A stretch of 64,000 nt of DNA, taken from the sequence record MZ443771.1, one strand, 5' to 3'. The notes below the pieces were generated by a model. The model saw only the letters and a program-made list of their open reading frames with translations. It searched no databases and was not told the DNA's origin. Every line of letters starts with the position of its first letter. The first letter of the stretch is position 1. Position numbers and translations under genes: made by a program. Below are positions 23,063 through 61,649 of this stretch, piece by piece.

Positions 23063-23097
23063 CTAGTCCTATCAGTGCGTCACATATTGATGGCTGT

Positions 23098-23106
23098 TAT
23101 TTACAG
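23098..23106 (-). promoter_or_regulatory. Putative replication-class promoter motif (CTGTAAATA)
   Basis: Between a terminator and the polA start, 36 nt upstream. Confidence 0.6.
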
Positions 23107-23118
23107 ATTCCGAAAAGC

Positions 23119-23145
23119 AAAAAGGGCAGCCGAAGCCACCCTTTT
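23119..23145 (-). terminator. Intrinsic terminator (GGGTGGC-TTCG-GCTGCCC)
   Basis: Stem-loop plus T-run after 23155..24177. Confidence 0.85.
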
Positions 23146-23154
23146 GGATTAAAT

Positions 23155-36303: not shown

Positions 36304-37592
36304 TACTTAACCGATTGCTTGAGCAGTCGTTTCTGCGCAGGGCTGAGACCCATGACTTCGGCAATGTCGTCGATTTTCTTCAACGTCAGTACGCCTTTCG
36401 CAGTGCCGCCGCTACCAGTCAGGGAGACCTTAACGAACTCACGTCCGCTACGACCATTGACCATCTGGTGAACGATGCTGTTCTTACCGCCGCGGCCAGC
36501 ACGAAGCGCAGTCGATGCCATGCCCAGGATTTCGGTAACAGCTTCTTTCTTCTCGGTAGGGCTGAGGCCCGGAGCAAGACGAACATACAGGCTGTCATTC
36601 TGGACACGCACGTTGTCGAAGATTTCTTTCTTACGACCGCGAATGGTGTGCTGTGCATTACCCAGCTGAGTGGTGTCACGCAGGTTCTGAGTAGAGCGGT
36701 TGATTGGCTTACGCTCACTGTAGTTCAGGAAGCCGTCGAGAGCCATCAGGTGGTTGATGGTACGCTTCATCTCAGGAGCAGTTTTAATCTGACGACCCAT
36801 AGGGAAGCTGCCCGGAACTTTCTCGTCAACGAGTGACGTCAGGAAGTTCTCACTGATACCGCTTGCCACTGCGATAGTGGTAGACAGCACCAGAGCATAG
36901 TTCGGGTAGTGCAGACCATCAGAGTTTACGAAGTTGTCGATAAACACATAGGTCTGGAAGCAGATAGGGTCGGTGCCTGACGCGATGAATGTACGAGTAC
37001 GAATCTTCGAATAGTCTTCTTTATTCAGAATCTTCGACAGGTAGTTAGCGATAGTCGCAGCCAGCTTGGTATGTTCTTTCGGAGCGCCGTTCTTAACGTC
37101 GATGCTCATCAGTTTAACCAATTTGGTCTGCTGGTCTTTCGCTTGCGTGATGACGTTCAGCAGGGACTTTGCAGCAGTGCTCTGATCTTTAAATGCGCTG
37201 AAAGTCTTGCTGCTAAGAATCTGATAGGCGACAGACAGTTCACCAATTGCTTGTGACAGTTGGCTAACCTGCTGGTTATACTGCGCCTTGTTCTTAACGT
37301 CAGTGATATCAATCTTCGACAGGTCGATTACCTGATTCAGGTCGATAGCTTTTGCCTGTTTGCCTTTGATTGAACCTTCAATATCAGACAGTTCAATCGC
37401 TTTGGCACTCATCGACAGGAGTTTTTTCGGGATGACGACAGACGTGGCTTGTGCGATAACTTTATCGAGTACGTTGCGGAACTCTTTCGCTGTACGCGCA
37501 CCGCGTAGGGCAGTCATGTTCCCAGAGCTATAGTCAACAGATGCGCTGATACTGCTAACTTCATTGTTTTTGGCAGTCTTAGCCATGATCAT
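36303..37592 (-). CDS. Putative virion/head protein
   Basis: 429 aa; behind CTAATTTT; N-terminal EVSSISAS. Confidence 0.5.
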   Translation of the reverse strand: MIMAKTAKNNEVSSISASVDYSSGNMTALRGARTAKEFRNVLDKVIAQATSVVIPKKLLSMSAKAIELSDIEGSIKGKQAKAIDLNQVIDLSKIDITDVKNKAQYNQQVSQLSQAIGELSVAYQILSSKTFSAFKDQSTAAKSLLNVITQAKDQQTKLVKLMSIDVKNGAPKEHTKLAATIANYLSKILNKEDYSKIRTRTFIASGTDPICFQTYVFIDNFVNSDGLHYPNYALVLSTTIAVASGISENFLTSLVDEKVPGSFPMGRQIKTAPEMKRTINHLMALDGFLNYSERKPINRSTQNLRDTTQLGNAQHTIRGRKKEIFDNVRVQNDSLYVRLAPGLSPTEKKEAVTEILGMASTALRAGRGGKNSIVHQMVNGRSGREFVKVSLTGSGGTAKGVLTLKKIDDIAEVMGLSPAQKRLLKQSVK

Positions 37593-37623
37593 CCTCTACT
37601 GGGTCTAGTAATCATATCGAATA

Positions 37624-37631
37624 AAAATTAG
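37624..37631 (-). promoter_or_regulatory. Putative late promoter motif (CTAATTTT)
   Basis: 32 nt upstream of 37592. Confidence 0.6.
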
Positions 37632-37698
37632 CGACTAAGGGCTGATTTGTCCGATATAGTGTTCGCATAGACTTTACAAATTTCAGGCGCATGAATGC

Positions 37699-37728
37699 AA
37701 AAAGGGGCAGCCGAAGCCACCCCTTTTT
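37699..37728 (-). terminator. Intrinsic terminator (GGGTGGC-TTCG-GCTGCCC)
   Basis: Stem-loop plus T-run after the histone-like gene. Confidence 0.85.
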
Positions 37729-37760
37729 GTTTCGTAGTAGTGTCGAATCGACCAGGCCGA

Positions 37761-38530: not shown

Positions 38531-39610
38531 TTACATAGCAGTATACCCTATTTCAGATAACACCGCGTCAAGTTCCTTGCGAGCGCGAACCCGCAAGGAC
38601 TTTTTAATTCCCGAAGCCTTTAGGTAATCCTTAAGGCCATCGCGTGGGTCAATATCCGCGAGCGTTAACTCACTAACATCAACTGTATCTATATTATCGA
38701 GATCGACGCGTTTATTCGTGGAATTTAATTGGGAAATATTAGGGACACGAGTACGAATATCTGCTGGGATTGACACGGTATCTTTGACGATAACACGGTA
38801 TCGAATCGCAGGGTTTACCACAAGGCGAGACCAGTCTTTCTGATTTTCAATTGCAACGGTTTCTAATCTAAACCCAGGCTTGCTGTCAACGAACTTCCGT
38901 TGAACCACCAGCTCACCTTTCTTGTAGAAGGCGCGAATGTGGATGAACCCTTTAGGCAGCGCCTCACCAAACGTTTTCTGGTACGGTGAACCACAATATT
39001 CAAAGCGCTTCTTCTCAAGTACCTGAGCAAGGTGGATGTGTCCGCTAATCGTATAGTCACGCGGGTCTACCTTGATATCCTGCTTCGCTTTAAGTGGACG
39101 ACCGTTATCGCCAAGCGCACCAATAGCTTCAACGTGACAGAAGTTCAGACACGGCTTCTTGTGCTTGATACTCTCACGCGCAGGGTGTGGCAGGAAGTTT
39201 ACGATAACGCCATCAATCTCTACCTGCTCAGGTCTGAGGTAGATGTGTAGCGATTTGAGGAAGTCCCACTCACAGAACGTCTTAATCAAGTCCATGCTGG
39301 TGGACGTCATATCCGCCCAGTCGTGGTTGCCGCCACAATACCAAGTGTCGATAACACCTTCGTACTTGAGGAAGAATTGCATCAGCTTACGCTTCGTGTC
39401 ATCTTCCATGCGGAACTTATCAGTAATGTCGCCCGGAACAAAGATGTGACGAATACCGTGCTCTAACGCGTACTGATAGATACGGTTGAGTGTTTCGAGT
39501 TGGCGGTCAATGTGATCAGTAGGGAAGTGATTCGACAACCCTTCGAGATGCCAGTCGGACGTTACCAGTGCTTCCAGCATCTCTGCTACTTTCTTCTTCT
39601 TTTTCATCAC
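38531..39610 (-). CDS. sbcD: SbcD/Mre11/gp47-type metallophosphoesterase nuclease
   Basis: SDWHL, GDITD, GGNHD, SGHIH and YCGSP; alternative start at 39580. Confidence 0.9.
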   Translation of the reverse strand: MMKKKKKVAEMLEALVTSDWHLEGLSNHFPTDHIDRQLETLNRIYQYALEHGIRHIFVPGDITDKFRMEDDTKRKLMQFFLKYEGVIDTWYCGGNHDWADMTSTSMDLIKTFCEWDFLKSLHIYLRPEQVEIDGVIVNFLPHPARESIKHKKPCLNFCHVEAIGALGDNGRPLKAKQDIKVDPRDYTISGHIHLAQVLEKKRFEYCGSPYQKTFGEALPKGFIHIRAFYKKGELVVQRKFVDSKPGFRLETVAIENQKDWSRLVVNPAIRYRVIVKDTVSIPADIRTRVPNISQLNSTNKRVDLDNIDTVDVSELTLADIDPRDGLKDYLKASGIKKSLRVRARKELDAVLSEIGYTAM

Positions 39611-39636
39611 TACAATCCACAGGTTTCTTTGTAGGC

Positions 39637-39645
39637 TATTTACAG
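39637..39645 (-). promoter_or_regulatory. Putative replication-class promoter motif (CTGTAAATA)
   Basis: 27 nt upstream of sbcD. Confidence 0.6.
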
Positions 39646-39684
39646 ATCATAGGTGACTGTAAGGTAGGTTTGTGATCAGAAATG

Positions 39685-39711
39685 AAAAGAGGCAGCCGAA
39701 GCCACCTCTTT
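39685..39711 (-). terminator. Intrinsic terminator
   Basis: AGAGGTGGC-TTCG-GCTGCCTCT followed by TTT. Confidence 0.85.
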
Positions 39712-39714
39712 GAT

Positions 39715-52317: not shown

Positions 52318-52333
52318 GACGGCTCCAGAAATG

Positions 52334-52360
52334 AAAAAGGGCAGCCGAAGCCACCCTTTT
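52334..52360 (-). terminator. Intrinsic terminator (GGGTGGC-TTCG-GCTGCCC)
   Basis: Stem-loop plus T-run. Confidence 0.8.
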
Positions 52361-52447
52361 GTAGATGGCGCGCTATGCACCCGACTGTTAAGTCTACTAC
52401 GATTATTTTACCTCGCAGTAGTGGGCGAGGAGATTAGGATCACCTCC

Positions 52448-54410: not shown

Positions 54411-54508
54411 TATTTAGACAAAAAGAAAGGACCACATCCAAAATGGAGGGTCCTTATGGTGTTACAATAAGTTTTGGATGGTAACGCATCGGCAGTGGGC
54501 GCTGTCGA

Positions 54509-54706
54509 TTAGGCAAAGCACATTTCCCAGCGCGGTACAACGCGGAAGAAGTGCTTAAAGTTGGACGGTGGATTCTTCTTGATTGACTCAAGTTTCTGTT
54601 CCACTACGTCATAATCTTTTATGCCACTCTCAACGGTGTGAGTGGTGAACGTACCGTCAGCCTGAATCAAATCGGCGACAACACGGTAGCTTGGTCTACG
54701 AAGCAT
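54509..54706 (-). CDS. Hypothetical protein
   Basis: 65 aa with AGGAG RBS and CTGTAAACA at 54746-54754. Confidence 0.6.
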   Translation of the reverse strand: MLRRPSYRVVADLIQADGTFTTHTVESGIKDYDVVEQKLESIKKNPPSNFKHFFRVVPRWEMCFA

Positions 54707-54794
54707 CTATTCTCCTGTGCTAAAATTTCTCGTTCTTCTGAATTATGTTTACAGTTTACCGCGAGTAGTCACATAAGAATAAAGTCAGACAAAT

Positions 54795-55135
54795 CTTAAA
54801 ACTCCAATAGGCTCTCAGTCGAAAACTTATTGGAGTCCACCCTGACAAGATGACGGTCCTGTCAAGGTTTTCTCCCCGTGCTATTCAATGCACCAGCACG
54901 GTAGCGCTCGCGGTCTTACGCCCTTTGTGGCAGCGAACATTTCGGCAGGTAGCGTGGTTCGCAGCCCTAGGCAGCCGCTTTCGGCCATTAGCGATAACGC
55001 GGTGTTACGCTACTTGGCCTAGGGTGACTCTGGGCCGAGTCTGTACAAAAAAGAGTTCGGCCTATCCCCAAATTCGGCAAAAGAAATAAGCCGAACTAAA
55101 CAGTCAGCGCAAACTCCGTATGCACTGTTTTGTAC
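54795..55135 (-). ncRNA. Putative structured non-coding RNA (or structured ssDNA element), about 340 nt
   Basis: Gene-free gap with at least 8 stem-loops; CTAATTTA at 55141-55148 upstream and a terminator-like final hairpin; strand inferred only from the promoter motif. Confidence 0.55.
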
Positions 55136-55175
55136 TGTCATAAATTAGAAACATCCTGTAATATTCAGACAATTC

Positions 55176-55763
55176 TTAGTTCAACATTGGCGTTAGATTT
55201 TCTAAGAAGTGTTTGCGATCAAACGACGAAATTCGGTGAGGATGATCGACGTGCATGTTCCAGCCTTTGTTGAACAGCAGGATATTGCGCGGCAACGATA
55301 CGACCGTACCAACACGGGTGAACGAATCACGCACGGCAGTTACTGGATTGTCATCGACGAGAATCCAAGTACCTTCACCGTAAAGCTCGTTCAGGAAATC
55401 AATCTTGTTCGGATGCTCACGGCTATCGAGGCAGTGAATGTGATCGAACAATGAGAGATGCTTGGACAGAGACTTGCGTGTGTAGCGTTCACCTTTTTCG
55501 TGATAGCCACGATGCGTACAAATGCCAGCACTGAATCCATCACGCACCAGCATCGCTACTGTCTGGATGAAGTAGTCACGCATGTTGGCTTTGAGCATGA
55601 AGCTACCATCAGCCAGCATATCGACAAACGGTTGCTTGCCGTTCTCTGGAGTGATGTACGTGTCGGTGCCTGGGTAGATTCCGAAGTTCATCAGATAACA
55701 CAACATGAAATTATGGGTATCGAATGCTGTGTCATCCATGTCAAAGAAAATGTGTTTGATCAT
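55176..55763 (-). CDS. HAD-superfamily phosphatase, 5'(3')-deoxyribonucleotidase-like
   Basis: IFFDMDDT (motif I), ICTHRG, K, ILVDDN (motif IV). Confidence 0.8.
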   Translation of the reverse strand: MIKHIFFDMDDTAFDTHNFMLCYLMNFGIYPGTDTYITPENGKQPFVDMLADGSFMLKANMRDYFIQTVAMLVRDGFSAGICTHRGYHEKGERYTRKSLSKHLSLFDHIHCLDSREHPNKIDFLNELYGEGTWILVDDNPVTAVRDSFTRVGTVVSLPRNILLFNKGWNMHVDHPHRISSFDRKHFLENLTPMLN

Positions 55764-59627: not shown

Positions 59628-61273
59628 TCATCTCCCATAAAATCGAGGGTATCAGAGAATTTCTTAATGACGAATCTCGCCTTCGCTGATTGAACGTCAC
59701 CCTTAGATTTCAACAGGGCACCGTCGTGTTCGAGCGAGTAGACGATCTCAACATTACCGTTTAGAATCGCTTCAAACAAATGATTCGACTCTATGCCAGA
59801 TATGCAATGACTCATGGTTCTTCGTCGTACCTTGCGCGACGAAATACATTGGTCACGTTCGAGAACATACTTGGCCCCAGTCTCACACGTCAGCATCATC
59901 CCTTCGGATGTGTAGCGAAAACGCTTCGAGTAAATTTCACATAGCTGCTGGAGCGCACTGATAAAGTGGCGGCAGTCTATGTTCCACGACTCAACGAAGT
60001 CATACACCTCACTAAGATTTTTGAAGTGAGGGCGAAGCGCCATAACAGCACTAGACTTCGGACTTTTCGCTAACGTGTCCGCGCTAAACAGCGTACCGTA
60101 GAAACAGATTTTCACCAGCTTCTTCGACAGTCGCATGTTGTTCGGGTTAGCTTTCTGGAGCTTGTCTACAATGTCATTTACAGTATGCACATCGTCAAGG
60201 AAAGGACATTCGATGCCGTTGTCTGCAAACTCTTTACGGATGATGTTGAGCTGGCTGCTCTCCATATCCCAGTTTTCACCGACAACGCTACACGCTTGTT
60301 TAAGAACAGCAGGGAAGGATTGGAAACCACCACCCTGCTCAAACAGACGACCACCAACTCGCGCAATAGTGTATGCTGGGTAGTATCTGATTATCAGAGG
60401 TTCTTCGGACACAATCTGAATTGGCCCTGACAGAATAGCCTGTAGACAGCTCATCACCTGATGATATTGCTTGAGGGCTTTTCTCGTTCCCCTGAAACTC
60501 TTAACAGTCAAATAGTCCAAGATAGGGTCAATAGCAATTTCATTCGGCCCTATCTTTTTCAACACAGCGGTGTATAGCTTACGCGCAGCACGATCTCGAT
60601 TAGAGTTCAGACCGTATCGCGCATTTCCGCCTGACAGATCGTGCTTACGAGGCTTGAATGGTTTGTTAGCACTCGCGCTTATCATCTCAAGGATAGTTTG
60701 CCCGAACCTCTCTTGCACCGCTTTGAGCGGACTATAGAGTCGGGTGAGTTCGAGAATCTCTCGACTCGACTTAGGGCGATTAGGGTACATCGCGTCTAAG
60801 CACTTTCGCTTGATACGAAATTCACGACAACGCCCCGGACTTGTCGGCGTCTTCTTACGATAACGCTTATAGTCCATGACATTTGCGATTAGCCACTCAA
60901 GGGCCCTGCTGAAATGTTTCTCAGTTCGTTCCCACTTAGGCCCTACTGGACCGCGTAGAGTGTTTTCACATCCGAATACCATCGGAAGCTCTTTAACGCC
61001 GAGCTTTCTGCTAAACGGAACCCAGACGGCACCAAACTTCTCAAATTTCTTTCGTTTTGTCGGATATATCGACGATTGAAGCACATGCCAGAAAAATAAG
61101 TTAATCTGCCGTCGATATTCAGCCTCATGCTTTTCCGGTCCATCGTACGGGCATTTCTCAACGACGTTATCGCGTACCCACACAAGAGGTTCTAATTCCT
61201 GGTAGGTAGGGTTGCGCGTCAAGACGGCTTTGCCTTTTTTCATAAAAGAAGACATTCGGATCTCCTGAATCAC
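59624..61273 (-). CDS. Divergent family-A-polymerase-like protein without an exonuclease domain
   Basis: GGRL....GFQ, WDMESSQLNII (motif A-like), KLVKICFYGTLF (motif B-like) and SLEHDGALL (motif C-like), in the correct order. Confidence 0.55.
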   Translation of the reverse strand: MIQEIRMSSFMKKGKAVLTRNPTYQELEPLVWVRDNVVEKCPYDGPEKHEAEYRRQINLFFWHVLQSSIYPTKRKKFEKFGAVWVPFSRKLGVKELPMVFGCENTLRGPVGPKWERTEKHFSRALEWLIANVMDYKRYRKKTPTSPGRCREFRIKRKCLDAMYPNRPKSSREILELTRLYSPLKAVQERFGQTILEMISASANKPFKPRKHDLSGGNARYGLNSNRDRAARKLYTAVLKKIGPNEIAIDPILDYLTVKSFRGTRKALKQYHQVMSCLQAILSGPIQIVSEEPLIIRYYPAYTIARVGGRLFEQGGGFQSFPAVLKQACSVVGENWDMESSQLNIIRKEFADNGIECPFLDDVHTVNDIVDKLQKANPNNMRLSKKLVKICFYGTLFSADTLAKSPKSSAVMALRPHFKNLSEVYDFVESWNIDCRHFISALQQLCEIYSKRFRYTSEGMMLTCETGAKYVLERDQCISSRKVRRRTMSHCISGIESNHLFEAILNGNVEIVYSLEHDGALLKSKGDVQSAKARFVIKKFSDTLDFMGDD

Positions 61274-61297
61274 TTCTTTTCTTCGTTTTCTTCTTGT

Positions 61298-61306
61298 TGT
61301 TTACAG
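61298..61306 (-). promoter_or_regulatory. Putative replication-class promoter motif (CTGTAAACA)
   Basis: 25 nt upstream of 61273. Confidence 0.5.
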
Positions 61307-61649
61307 AAACCTCATGCGCTTGCATGGCGATACAAGGCAGGTAGAAGAACAAGCAACGCTGGGCGATCGAGCGGCGCGCTCAAGGCACGGGATATACACA
61401 TACAGCTAGGGGCTTTAGGCGCACTCCGTTTTTGAGATATCAAAAGGGTGAAACCATCGCTATATGCTGTATAACCCATGTCCTACACGCCCGTACATGC
61501 TCATAGGGACGATCTCAATTTTCAAAAAGATCTCCCCGAAACCATGTAAATTTTTTTAAATTTGGGTGAGATTTCTGTCCATTTTTTAACCAAACCACTA
61601 AAAACAGAGGAAAAACCCGAATAAAATCAAGGACTTTCCCCTTTTTCAG

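Follow-up and report, generated by a model that had tools for sequence, protein, structure and literature searches.

A candidate non-coding RNA family with a conserved pseudoknotted fold in a lineage of jumbo phages of Erwinia, Dickeya and Yersinia

Orphan RNAs of the GOLLD, ROOL and raiA type are conserved, phage-borne intergenic blocks with covarying stems and invariant loops, the role of which is not deducible from sequence. In this study, we describe an element with these same traits in the Erwinia phage pEa_SNUABM_20 (Alexandravirus, 265.9 kb), of which the 64,000-nucleotide (nt) stretch of record MZ443771.1 analysed here, hereafter the window, was found by blastn to be a part (record position = window position + 124000). 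The element lies in a gene-free gap between two minus-strand coding sequences (CDS). In contrast to GOLLD, ROOL and raiA-type RNAs it matches nothing in Rfam 15, is smaller (~340 nt), stands in a window without tRNA genes and, as far as searched, belongs to one jumbo-phage lineage. It reads as a previously undescribed non-coding RNA gene, and family, of the lineage of jumbo phages to which Erwinia, Dickeya and Yersinia phages belong. That a selected RNA structure exists at this place we hold to be very probable, and to the proposal that the RNA is a stand-alone, trans-acting molecule we give a probability of about one half. Jumbo phages of plant-pathogen hosts serve as biocontrol agents, and most of their genomes are unannotated; the ~340-nt RNA is a concrete object for experiment and may lead to a step of infection, not known so far, that depends on RNA.

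The gap (54707-55175) measures 469 nt and is the largest within the 50 kb of the window that could be mapped to the annotation, the runner-up measuring 394 nt. The statement of a preliminary description of this DNA, made from the letters of the window, that the element fills the largest gene-free gap thus holds within the mapped part. The gap is retained at the same place in 46 of 46 related phage records, at 70-100% identity; relative to the SNUABM_25 group it is 62% identical, and the two flanking CDS are 50% and 60% identical. The gap is about equally conserved as the flanking coding DNA. A profile of the RNA family gave one full-length match in the window (E 2.5e-110). When compared with shuffled sequence, the minus-strand fold (-166.4 kcal/mol) reached a z-score of -5.8 and the plus-strand fold (-143.9 kcal/mol) one of -4.4.

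The strongest evidence for a selected RNA structure is the pattern of substitutions. The gap was aligned from 21 phages, and then its 346-nt core from 25 distinct sequences, with MAFFT only; a structure of 92 pairs was written from RNAalifold output and inspection, and the alignment was not fitted to it. In this structure 93.1% of the cells are paired, as against 30-46% when the partners are slid by 1-3 columns. Both sides have changed at 31 pairs (6-12 for slid partners), the covariation score is 0.203 (slid, 0.035-0.075), and none of 500 shuffles matched the observed pairing and covariation values. Across lineages, the stems covary while the loops and junctions are invariant. The comparison of related loci that the preliminary description had proposed therefore did reveal compensatory changes, and the retention of the RNA with its fold in at least seven lineages points to strong selection. 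The elements of the RNA are, from its 5' to its 3' end after the whole:

54799-55135, minus strand: whole structured RNA, ~337 nt, with predicted ends
55128-55135 with 55043-55050, minus strand: possible closing helix P1, GUACAAAA with UUUUGUAC, predicted by RNAalifold
55105-55127, minus strand: hairpin hpA, 7 pairs, conserved GGAGUU in the loop, supported by covariation
55047-55096, minus strand: hairpin hpB, 14 pairs, then UC and 6 U, supported by covariation, terminator-like
55026-55041, minus strand: small hairpin PC, GACUC/GAGUC
54983-55019, minus strand: hairpin PD, outer GGCC/GGCC and inner AGCG/CGCU, large loop with the invariant 11-nt UAACACCGCGU
54910-54978, minus strand: long-range helix PE0, GCGG (54975-54978) with CCGC (54910-54913), which encloses the PE hairpin and the GUAAGAC strand
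54922-54971, minus strand: hairpin PE1/PE2, invariant GCUACCU in the loop, PE2 supported by covariation
54913-54919, minus strand: conserved unpaired strand GUAAGAC, of which UAAGAC is invariant in 26 sequences of six lineages
54876-54907, minus strand: H-type pseudoknot, stem 1 formed by 54904-54907 with 54890-54893 and stem 2 by 54896-54901 with 54876-54881
54871-54875, minus strand: purine strand (GG)GGAGA directly behind the pseudoknot, GGG.G invariant and the next A at least 90% conserved in 26 sequences
54840-54867, minus strand: hairpin PG of 11 pairs, 5 of them changed on both sides, with CCGUCA as an invariant hexaloop
54799-54838, minus strand: terminal hairpin PH, ACUCCAAUA/UAUUGGAGU plus an upper stem, then UUUUAAG, 97% paired

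Each helix was also checked by script in 15 clade representatives, in which all listed strands are fully complementary. The number of distinct paired versions among them was 7 for hpA, 9 for hpB, 6 for PE0, 11 for PE2, 8 for pseudoknot stem 1, 7 for stem 2, 9 for PG (6 for its inner part) and 8 for PH. Realignment with a covariance model had put the pseudoknot stems of distant members two columns off; hence we rely on the script and on the unfitted alignment. The preliminary description had listed consecutive stems filling the gap, and five of these are kept by covariation, namely ACTCCAATA/TATTGGAGT (PH), CCTGACA/TGTCAAGG (PG), CCGTGCT/AGCACGG (pseudoknot stem 2), GCGAAC/GTTCGC (PE2) and, in its outer 4-5 pairs, TAGCGATAAC/GTTACGCTA (outer PD). 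The stem CCCTAGGC/GCCTAGGG occurs in the closest relatives only, being lost in Alexandra, Y3 and the SNUABM_25 group, and the three 5' stems GGCCGA/TCGGCC, TTCGGC/GCCGAA and AAACAGT/ACTGTTT are window-specific alternatives not kept in relatives, where the covarying pairs form hpA and hpB instead. The pseudoknot and PE0 were absent from that list.

With respect to the 5' part of the RNA, P1 is invariant in the 25 sequences, so that covariation speaks neither for nor against it, and it is not kept in Yoloswag. All hpA cells are paired (100%), with 3 of 7 pairs changed on both sides, and hpA occurs in the Yersinia phage fHe-Yen9-02 too. In hpB, the stem base of which (GUUCGGCC/GGCCGAAC) is G+C-rich, 6 pairs have changed on both sides. 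The T-run behind it counts 6-12 T among relatives, and equivalents of hpB followed by 5 U are present in Yoloswag, SNUABM_5 and fHe-Yen9-02. The hpB loop is partly conserved and 13-26 nt long in the clade of the window, and 6-17 nt long in Yoloswag, SNUABM_5 and mg21; at 14 nt in the window, it caused hpB to be overlooked by a simple terminator scan. PC is present in 25 of 25 sequences and never varies; it is a weakly supported element. The inner stem of PD changes from AGCG/CGCU to AGUG/CACU in Y3 and is extended to UCAGCG/CGCUGA in the SNUABM_25 group. The PD helices (5-7) are 76-84% paired on the raw alignment, and on our reading of the alignments the unpaired cells would mostly be due to misalignment. 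In the PD loop of pEp_SNUABM_52 (L017) there is a 10-nt tandem duplication of the invariant GTAACACCGC motif.

In the 3' part, a 2-nt insertion in one strand of PE0 in the SNUABM_25 group is compensated on the other (GCGAGG/CCUCGC). Five of the 6 inner pairs of PE2 have changed on both sides, while the outer part, PE1, is 49% paired and poorly supported. That GCUACC might pair with the GGUGG preceding the last hairpin was considered and dropped, as by eye this pairing is not kept in Y3 or the Alexandra group. The hexaloop hairpin with CCGUCA is placed elsewhere in Yoloswag-type RNAs, and JA-type RNAs have CCGACA. The base of PH is invariant in close relatives and shows compensatory changes in Dickeya phage JA13, the JA-like metagenomic contig L076 and fHe-Yen9-02. 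In Yoloswag and SNUABM_5, PH lacks the following U-run, which argues that PH is not a generic terminator.

The pseudoknot resembles the H-type pseudoknots of the T4 gene 32 leader operator and of riboswitch aptamers. As in these, two stems of 4-7 pairs follow each other in the order S1a-S2a-S1b-S2b and both covary, the first and second loops are short, and the third loop is longer and has invariant adenines. In stem 1, 100% of the cells are paired and both sides have changed at 2 pairs, and stem 2 is 88% paired with 4 such pairs; fHe-Yen9-02 adds a ninth version of stem 1 and an eighth of stem 2. Loop 3 measures 7-10 nt, and its AA is invariant in 26 sequences. In contrast to the T4 gene 32 operator type, the pseudoknot is one module of a far larger fold and no autoregulated protein was identified; unlike classical leader pseudoknots, it is separated from the next start codon by ~170 nt, in which promoter-like signals lie.

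With regard to the strand, the preliminary description had held that G-U wobbles do not clearly pick one. The alignment contradicts this. Within the structure there are 238 G-U cells as opposed to 47 A-C cells, reading the opposite strand lowers the pairing from 93.1% to 84.6%, and each of the 25 sequences folds more stably in the minus sense. The wobble counts and the folding energies thus indicate that the fold belongs to the minus strand, the one from which the genes are transcribed. Of the genes of the mapped 50 kb, only the last one, at the far end of the window, is a plus-strand CDS.

No open reading frame (ORF) is conserved in position, frame or length among the aligned relatives, and of the 183 indels that set them apart from the window, 153 have a length not divisible by three. 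Judged by this comparison, the structured region is non-protein-coding. Small hypothetical CDS are annotated over the homologous RNA in Yoloswag (gp204; L048 1803-1967), in SNUABM_5 (gp214, on the opposite strand; L049 1743-1868) and in fHe-Yen9-02 (_106c; L114 3265-3471). Taken together with the fact that every sequence offers some ORFs of 30-84 codons, these records might suggest an ordinary spacer holding one or more unannotated small protein genes plus terminators. We regard this as scarcely credible: the positions, frames and lengths of such ORFs differ between close relatives, the indels are mostly frame-breaking, and the substitutions are compensatory across helices and not codon-patterned. 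The gp204, gp214 and _106c annotations are probably spurious, and for these three genome records the annotation is corrected here.

Comparison with described RNA classes yielded no assignment. The Rfam check, likewise proposed in the preliminary description, gave 0 matches to Rfam 15 in the whole window at gathering thresholds, 0 at E up to 10 in 54500-55400, and nothing over the homologous loci of six other phages. ARAGORN found no tRNA or transfer-messenger RNA (tmRNA) in the window, in agreement with the earlier remark that neither a tRNA cloverleaf nor a tmRNA-type end is present. Literature searches returned no description of this RNA, nor of any non-coding RNA in this phage lineage. With helices that covary, no conserved ORF, no known family and a clear strand, the original proposal of a novel structured phage RNA is upheld. 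A group I intron was rejected: a conserved stop closes the upstream CDS, the gene that follows varies by lineage (clamp loader in JA13), and Rfam, which includes group I and II intron models, has no match. A resemblance to RNase P motifs found no Rfam support. Mimicry of the 16S decoding site (CCGUCA, ACACCGC) was dropped, as the matches are short and blastn against E. coli was empty. The idea that PH, as an anti-Shine-Dalgarno sequence, regulates genes that have UAUUGGAGU as ribosome site was also abandoned, that motif not being enriched in the window.

Beyond the close relatives, tblastn with the clamp loader listed related jumbo phages, and their syntenic loci were examined. There, nhmmer with the family profile found the 3' half of the RNA in Yoloswag and SNUABM_5 (Rivsvirus), directly behind the HAD/PNK-like gene (PNK, polynucleotide kinase) that also precedes the RNA in the window, and a shorter version was recognised by eye in JA13 (Salmondvirus). 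When viral and metagenome collections were scanned by pattern, three further members came to light, namely a SNUABM_5-like contig, a 256-kb contig of JA-like type and an Alexandra-like fragment; only these jumbo-phage-like contigs were true matches and the remainder arose by chance. A covariance model of the 3' domain (129 positions) gave 63-142 bits for true members and a single copy in the window at 135 bits. JA13 and L076 scored 63-69 bits, both being included in the alignment of the model. The copy in fHe-Yen9-02 scored 35.9 bits (E 1.7e-10), and this locus had been chosen via a neighbouring protein and not by any RNA pattern. The model found no copy in PaBG or Lu11, which share the replication genes; a pattern scan of 185,579 genomes, one per bacterial or archaeal species, gave low-scoring artefacts only, and the RNA had no blastn match in E. 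coli genomes or plasmids. As far as searched, the RNA is restricted to one jumbo-phage lineage, of Erwinia, Dickeya and Yersinia phages.

It seems that the RNA is flanked by two kinds of transcription signal, in the sense of the genes:

55141-55148, minus strand: promoter-like motif CTAATTTA, immediately before the 5' end of the RNA and without variation in the 21 aligned phages
54746-54754, minus strand: promoter-like motif CTGTAAACA, between the RNA and the downstream gene for a protein of 65 amino acids (aa)

The first belongs to a class, CTAATTTW, with 8 sites in the window, all on the minus strand, where 2.6 were expected and none of 100 shuffles reached this number; in Yoloswag, SNUABM_5, JA13 and L076, the RNA is likewise closely preceded by a similar CTAATT motif. 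From this we infer that CTAATTTA is used as a promoter. Its position on the minus strand, and the UUUUAAG behind the last hairpin, had both been named in the preliminary description and are borne out. The second class, CTGTAAAYA (the CTGTAAATA class), has 11 exact sites, all on the minus strand, where 0.8 were expected, and CTGTAAATA sites are labelled putative middle/late promoters in the Lu11 record. Minus-strand sites of the first class are found, for example, at 37624, 38480, 41625, 53020 and 55141, and of the second at 23098, 39637, 51313, 54402, 54746 and 61298; both classes occur on the coding strand only, mostly in gaps upstream of genes. Phages of this group are reported to carry sigma-factor genes rather than an RNA polymerase of their own (PMC7412058). 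Scans for sigma-70 promoters and simple terminators across the gap were uninformative, and our first promoter guesses, TCTGANNTTTA and the long CTGTAAANNTAATTCA, showed no enrichment. The earlier suggestion that the RNA is expressed late finds no support, as the motif upstream of it is of the CTAATTT class and the putative middle/late class, CTGTAAATA, lies downstream of it.

The layout in the JA-type phages is informative as to whether the RNA is a unit of its own. Behind the RNA, a canonical terminator was called by the scan in L076, and in JA13 a terminator-like hairpin with a U-run was seen by eye where the scan made no call; in both, the CTGTAAAT motif comes next and then the clamp-loader gene. 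This order of promoter motif, RNA, terminator and second promoter motif indicates a self-contained transcription unit, and it makes a leader function for the next gene less likely. A CTGTAAA motif also separates the RNA from the gene behind it in fHe-Yen9-02.

The alternative is a cis-acting element of a messenger RNA (mRNA), either the 3' untranslated region of the HAD/PNK-like operon or the leader of the 65-aa and clamp-loader genes, which would control read-through (with hpB as attenuator), processing, stability or translation, perhaps by sensing a ligand or a protein in the manner of a riboswitch or an operator. We consider this the main rival, a possible though on balance less likely explanation. 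It is consistent with the RNA sharing the strand of the genes and following the HAD/PNK-like gene directly in every case, with a terminator-like hpB upstream of the core, with the 65-aa gene following next or one gene later in 6 of 7 lineages, and with covarying stems and invariant loops, which are typical of riboswitch aptamers; SNUABM_5-type sequences, by eye, also hold two mutually exclusive hairpins before the next gene. Against it stand the terminator and promoter motif before the clamp loader in the JA-type loci, the CTGTAAA motif that intervenes in the window and in fHe-Yen9-02, the variation of the downstream gene among lineages, and the lack of a match to any riboswitch family. A riboswitch or cis-leader should have no promoter or terminator between it and the gene; such signals do intervene in the window and in the JA-type loci, whereas in the Yoloswag and SNUABM_5 types the RNA may be such a leader.

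Several observations weigh against a stand-alone, trans-acting RNA. In the Yoloswag and SNUABM_5 types, the stretch from the RNA to the next gene lacks a CTGTAAA motif, so that in these types the RNA might belong to an mRNA. The terminator-like hpB stands only ~95 nt past the putative start, with no promoter motif between it and the core, so that the core would require read-through. The sequences represent only about seven lineages, and shared descent inflates the covariation counts. In the search for a partner protein, the 65-aa protein showed no RNA-binding fold in its predicted structure, and the HAD/PNK-like gene is a poor clue, being common in jumbo phages that lack the RNA.

As to hpB itself, a G+C-rich hairpin followed by a U-run is what defines an intrinsic terminator, and hpB is terminator-like in this sense; termination there is presumed. 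With its G+C-rich stem base and 5-12 U, it resembles the end of small RNAs (sRNAs) that finish in a Rho-independent terminator, and hpA and hpB together (~95 nt) have the layout of an Hfq-type sRNA. In contrast to such sRNAs, the hpB loop in the clade of the window is longer than the 3-8 nt expected of an intrinsic terminator, the usual terminators of this phage have UUCG loops, and the conserved fold runs 250 nt farther. Terminators with a G+C-rich stem and a UUCG loop are a common feature of the minus-strand gaps of the window, and a near-identical cassette of G+C-rich stem, UUCG loop and T-run is present in the gaps 23063-23154, 37587-37760, 39608-39714 and 52318-52447.

Returning to the stand-alone RNA, we propose that transcription would start near 55135 from its own phage promoter, CTAATTTA, and that the 3' end would lie at or just past PH; partial termination at hpB may yield a short species of ~95 nt. 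During infection, the folded core would then bind a protein in trans, serving a phage or host factor as scaffold or as decoy, with the invariant loops as its recognition surface. It is further conceivable, as a speculation that we think rather improbable, that the RNA represents a new functional class, either a phage-made folded RNA that neutralises or hijacks a host factor (e.g., as decoy for a defence nuclease or RNA-binding protein) or a new ribozyme or ligand-sensing fold, the active surface of which would be the pseudoknot and the invariant loops UAACACCGCGU, GCUACCU, GUAAGAC and CCGUCA. ToxI and the phage pseudo-ToxI decoys are similar in being phage-borne pseudoknot RNAs of phages of Pectobacteriaceae and Erwiniaceae hosts, which makes a decoy role conceivable, and the 7-nt GCUACCU may be like a part of ToxI. 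A ToxI-like type III antitoxin as such was rejected: such RNAs consist of tandem direct repeats of ~30-40 nt upstream of an endoribonuclease toxin gene, and here there are no tandem repeats, no adjacent endoribonuclease gene and no Rfam match.

A self-cleaving or otherwise catalytic RNA, or a dedicated processing site that separates the upstream and downstream transcripts, would also account for a compact pseudoknotted fold with strictly invariant unpaired nucleotides. Small ribozymes are common in phage genomes. We nevertheless judge it very unlikely here, as no Rfam ribozyme matched at E up to 10, the sequences yielded no candidate site of cleavage, and the size and modular build of the RNA fit no known self-cleaving class.

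The preliminary description had offered, as an alternative to an RNA, a structured single-stranded DNA (ssDNA) site with an origin or packaging function. In this case hairpins of single-stranded or extruded DNA would mark an origin of replication, a site of priming or a signal for packaging. The RNA does lie in a neighbourhood of replication genes, with the clamp loader close by and SbcC farther along, and since G-T pairs are tolerated in DNA hairpins, the wobble asymmetry alone would also fit ssDNA of the same sense. The pseudoknot and the long-range helix with compensatory indels are, in contrast, typical of RNA, and the wobbles are strand-specific in the sense of the transcript. The element is flanked on both sides by promoter- or terminator-like signals of that same sense, within a co-directional gene block. 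The region is not AT-rich, and its only repeats are two spaced copies of GTAAnACCGCG, without tandem or direct repeats or iterons. PaBG and Lu11 share the replication genes and lack the RNA. We consequently disfavour a DNA-level site and regard it as highly improbable.

The genes on either side of the gap are the following:

55176-55763, minus strand: 195-aa gene, HAD/PNK-like, 5' neighbour of the gap in the direction of transcription
54509-54706, minus strand: 65-aa gene, 3' neighbour of the gap, with the clamp loader gene next

The 195-aa protein is HAD-like and gave a match to a PHROG family labelled polynucleotide kinase (E 1e-13), and a relative carries the annotation HAD-type phosphatase; it had no Pfam match and no clear solved relative by sequence. 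Its gene is widespread in unrelated jumbo phages, including many without the RNA. The 65-aa gene is strongly conserved and accompanies the RNA, directly or one gene later, in 6 of 7 lineages, with copies at L048 2608-2781 (unannotated in Yoloswag) and L114 3537-3734; the JA13 and JA-like loci are without it and likewise without the hpA/hpB module. AlphaFold gave the 65-aa protein a confident fold (pLDDT 89.6), a small beta-beta-alpha-alpha-beta unit, with no significant fold match in the PDB and only a faint likeness to small phage inhibitor proteins. The neighbouring genes yield no firm clue to the role of the RNA.

The second large gap of the window (61256-61649, 394 nt) has a minus-sense fold with a z-score of -3.96. 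It is full-length in only ~7 phage records and is missing even where the DNA around the RNA is 99-100% identical, which suggests a variable insert and not a conserved element.

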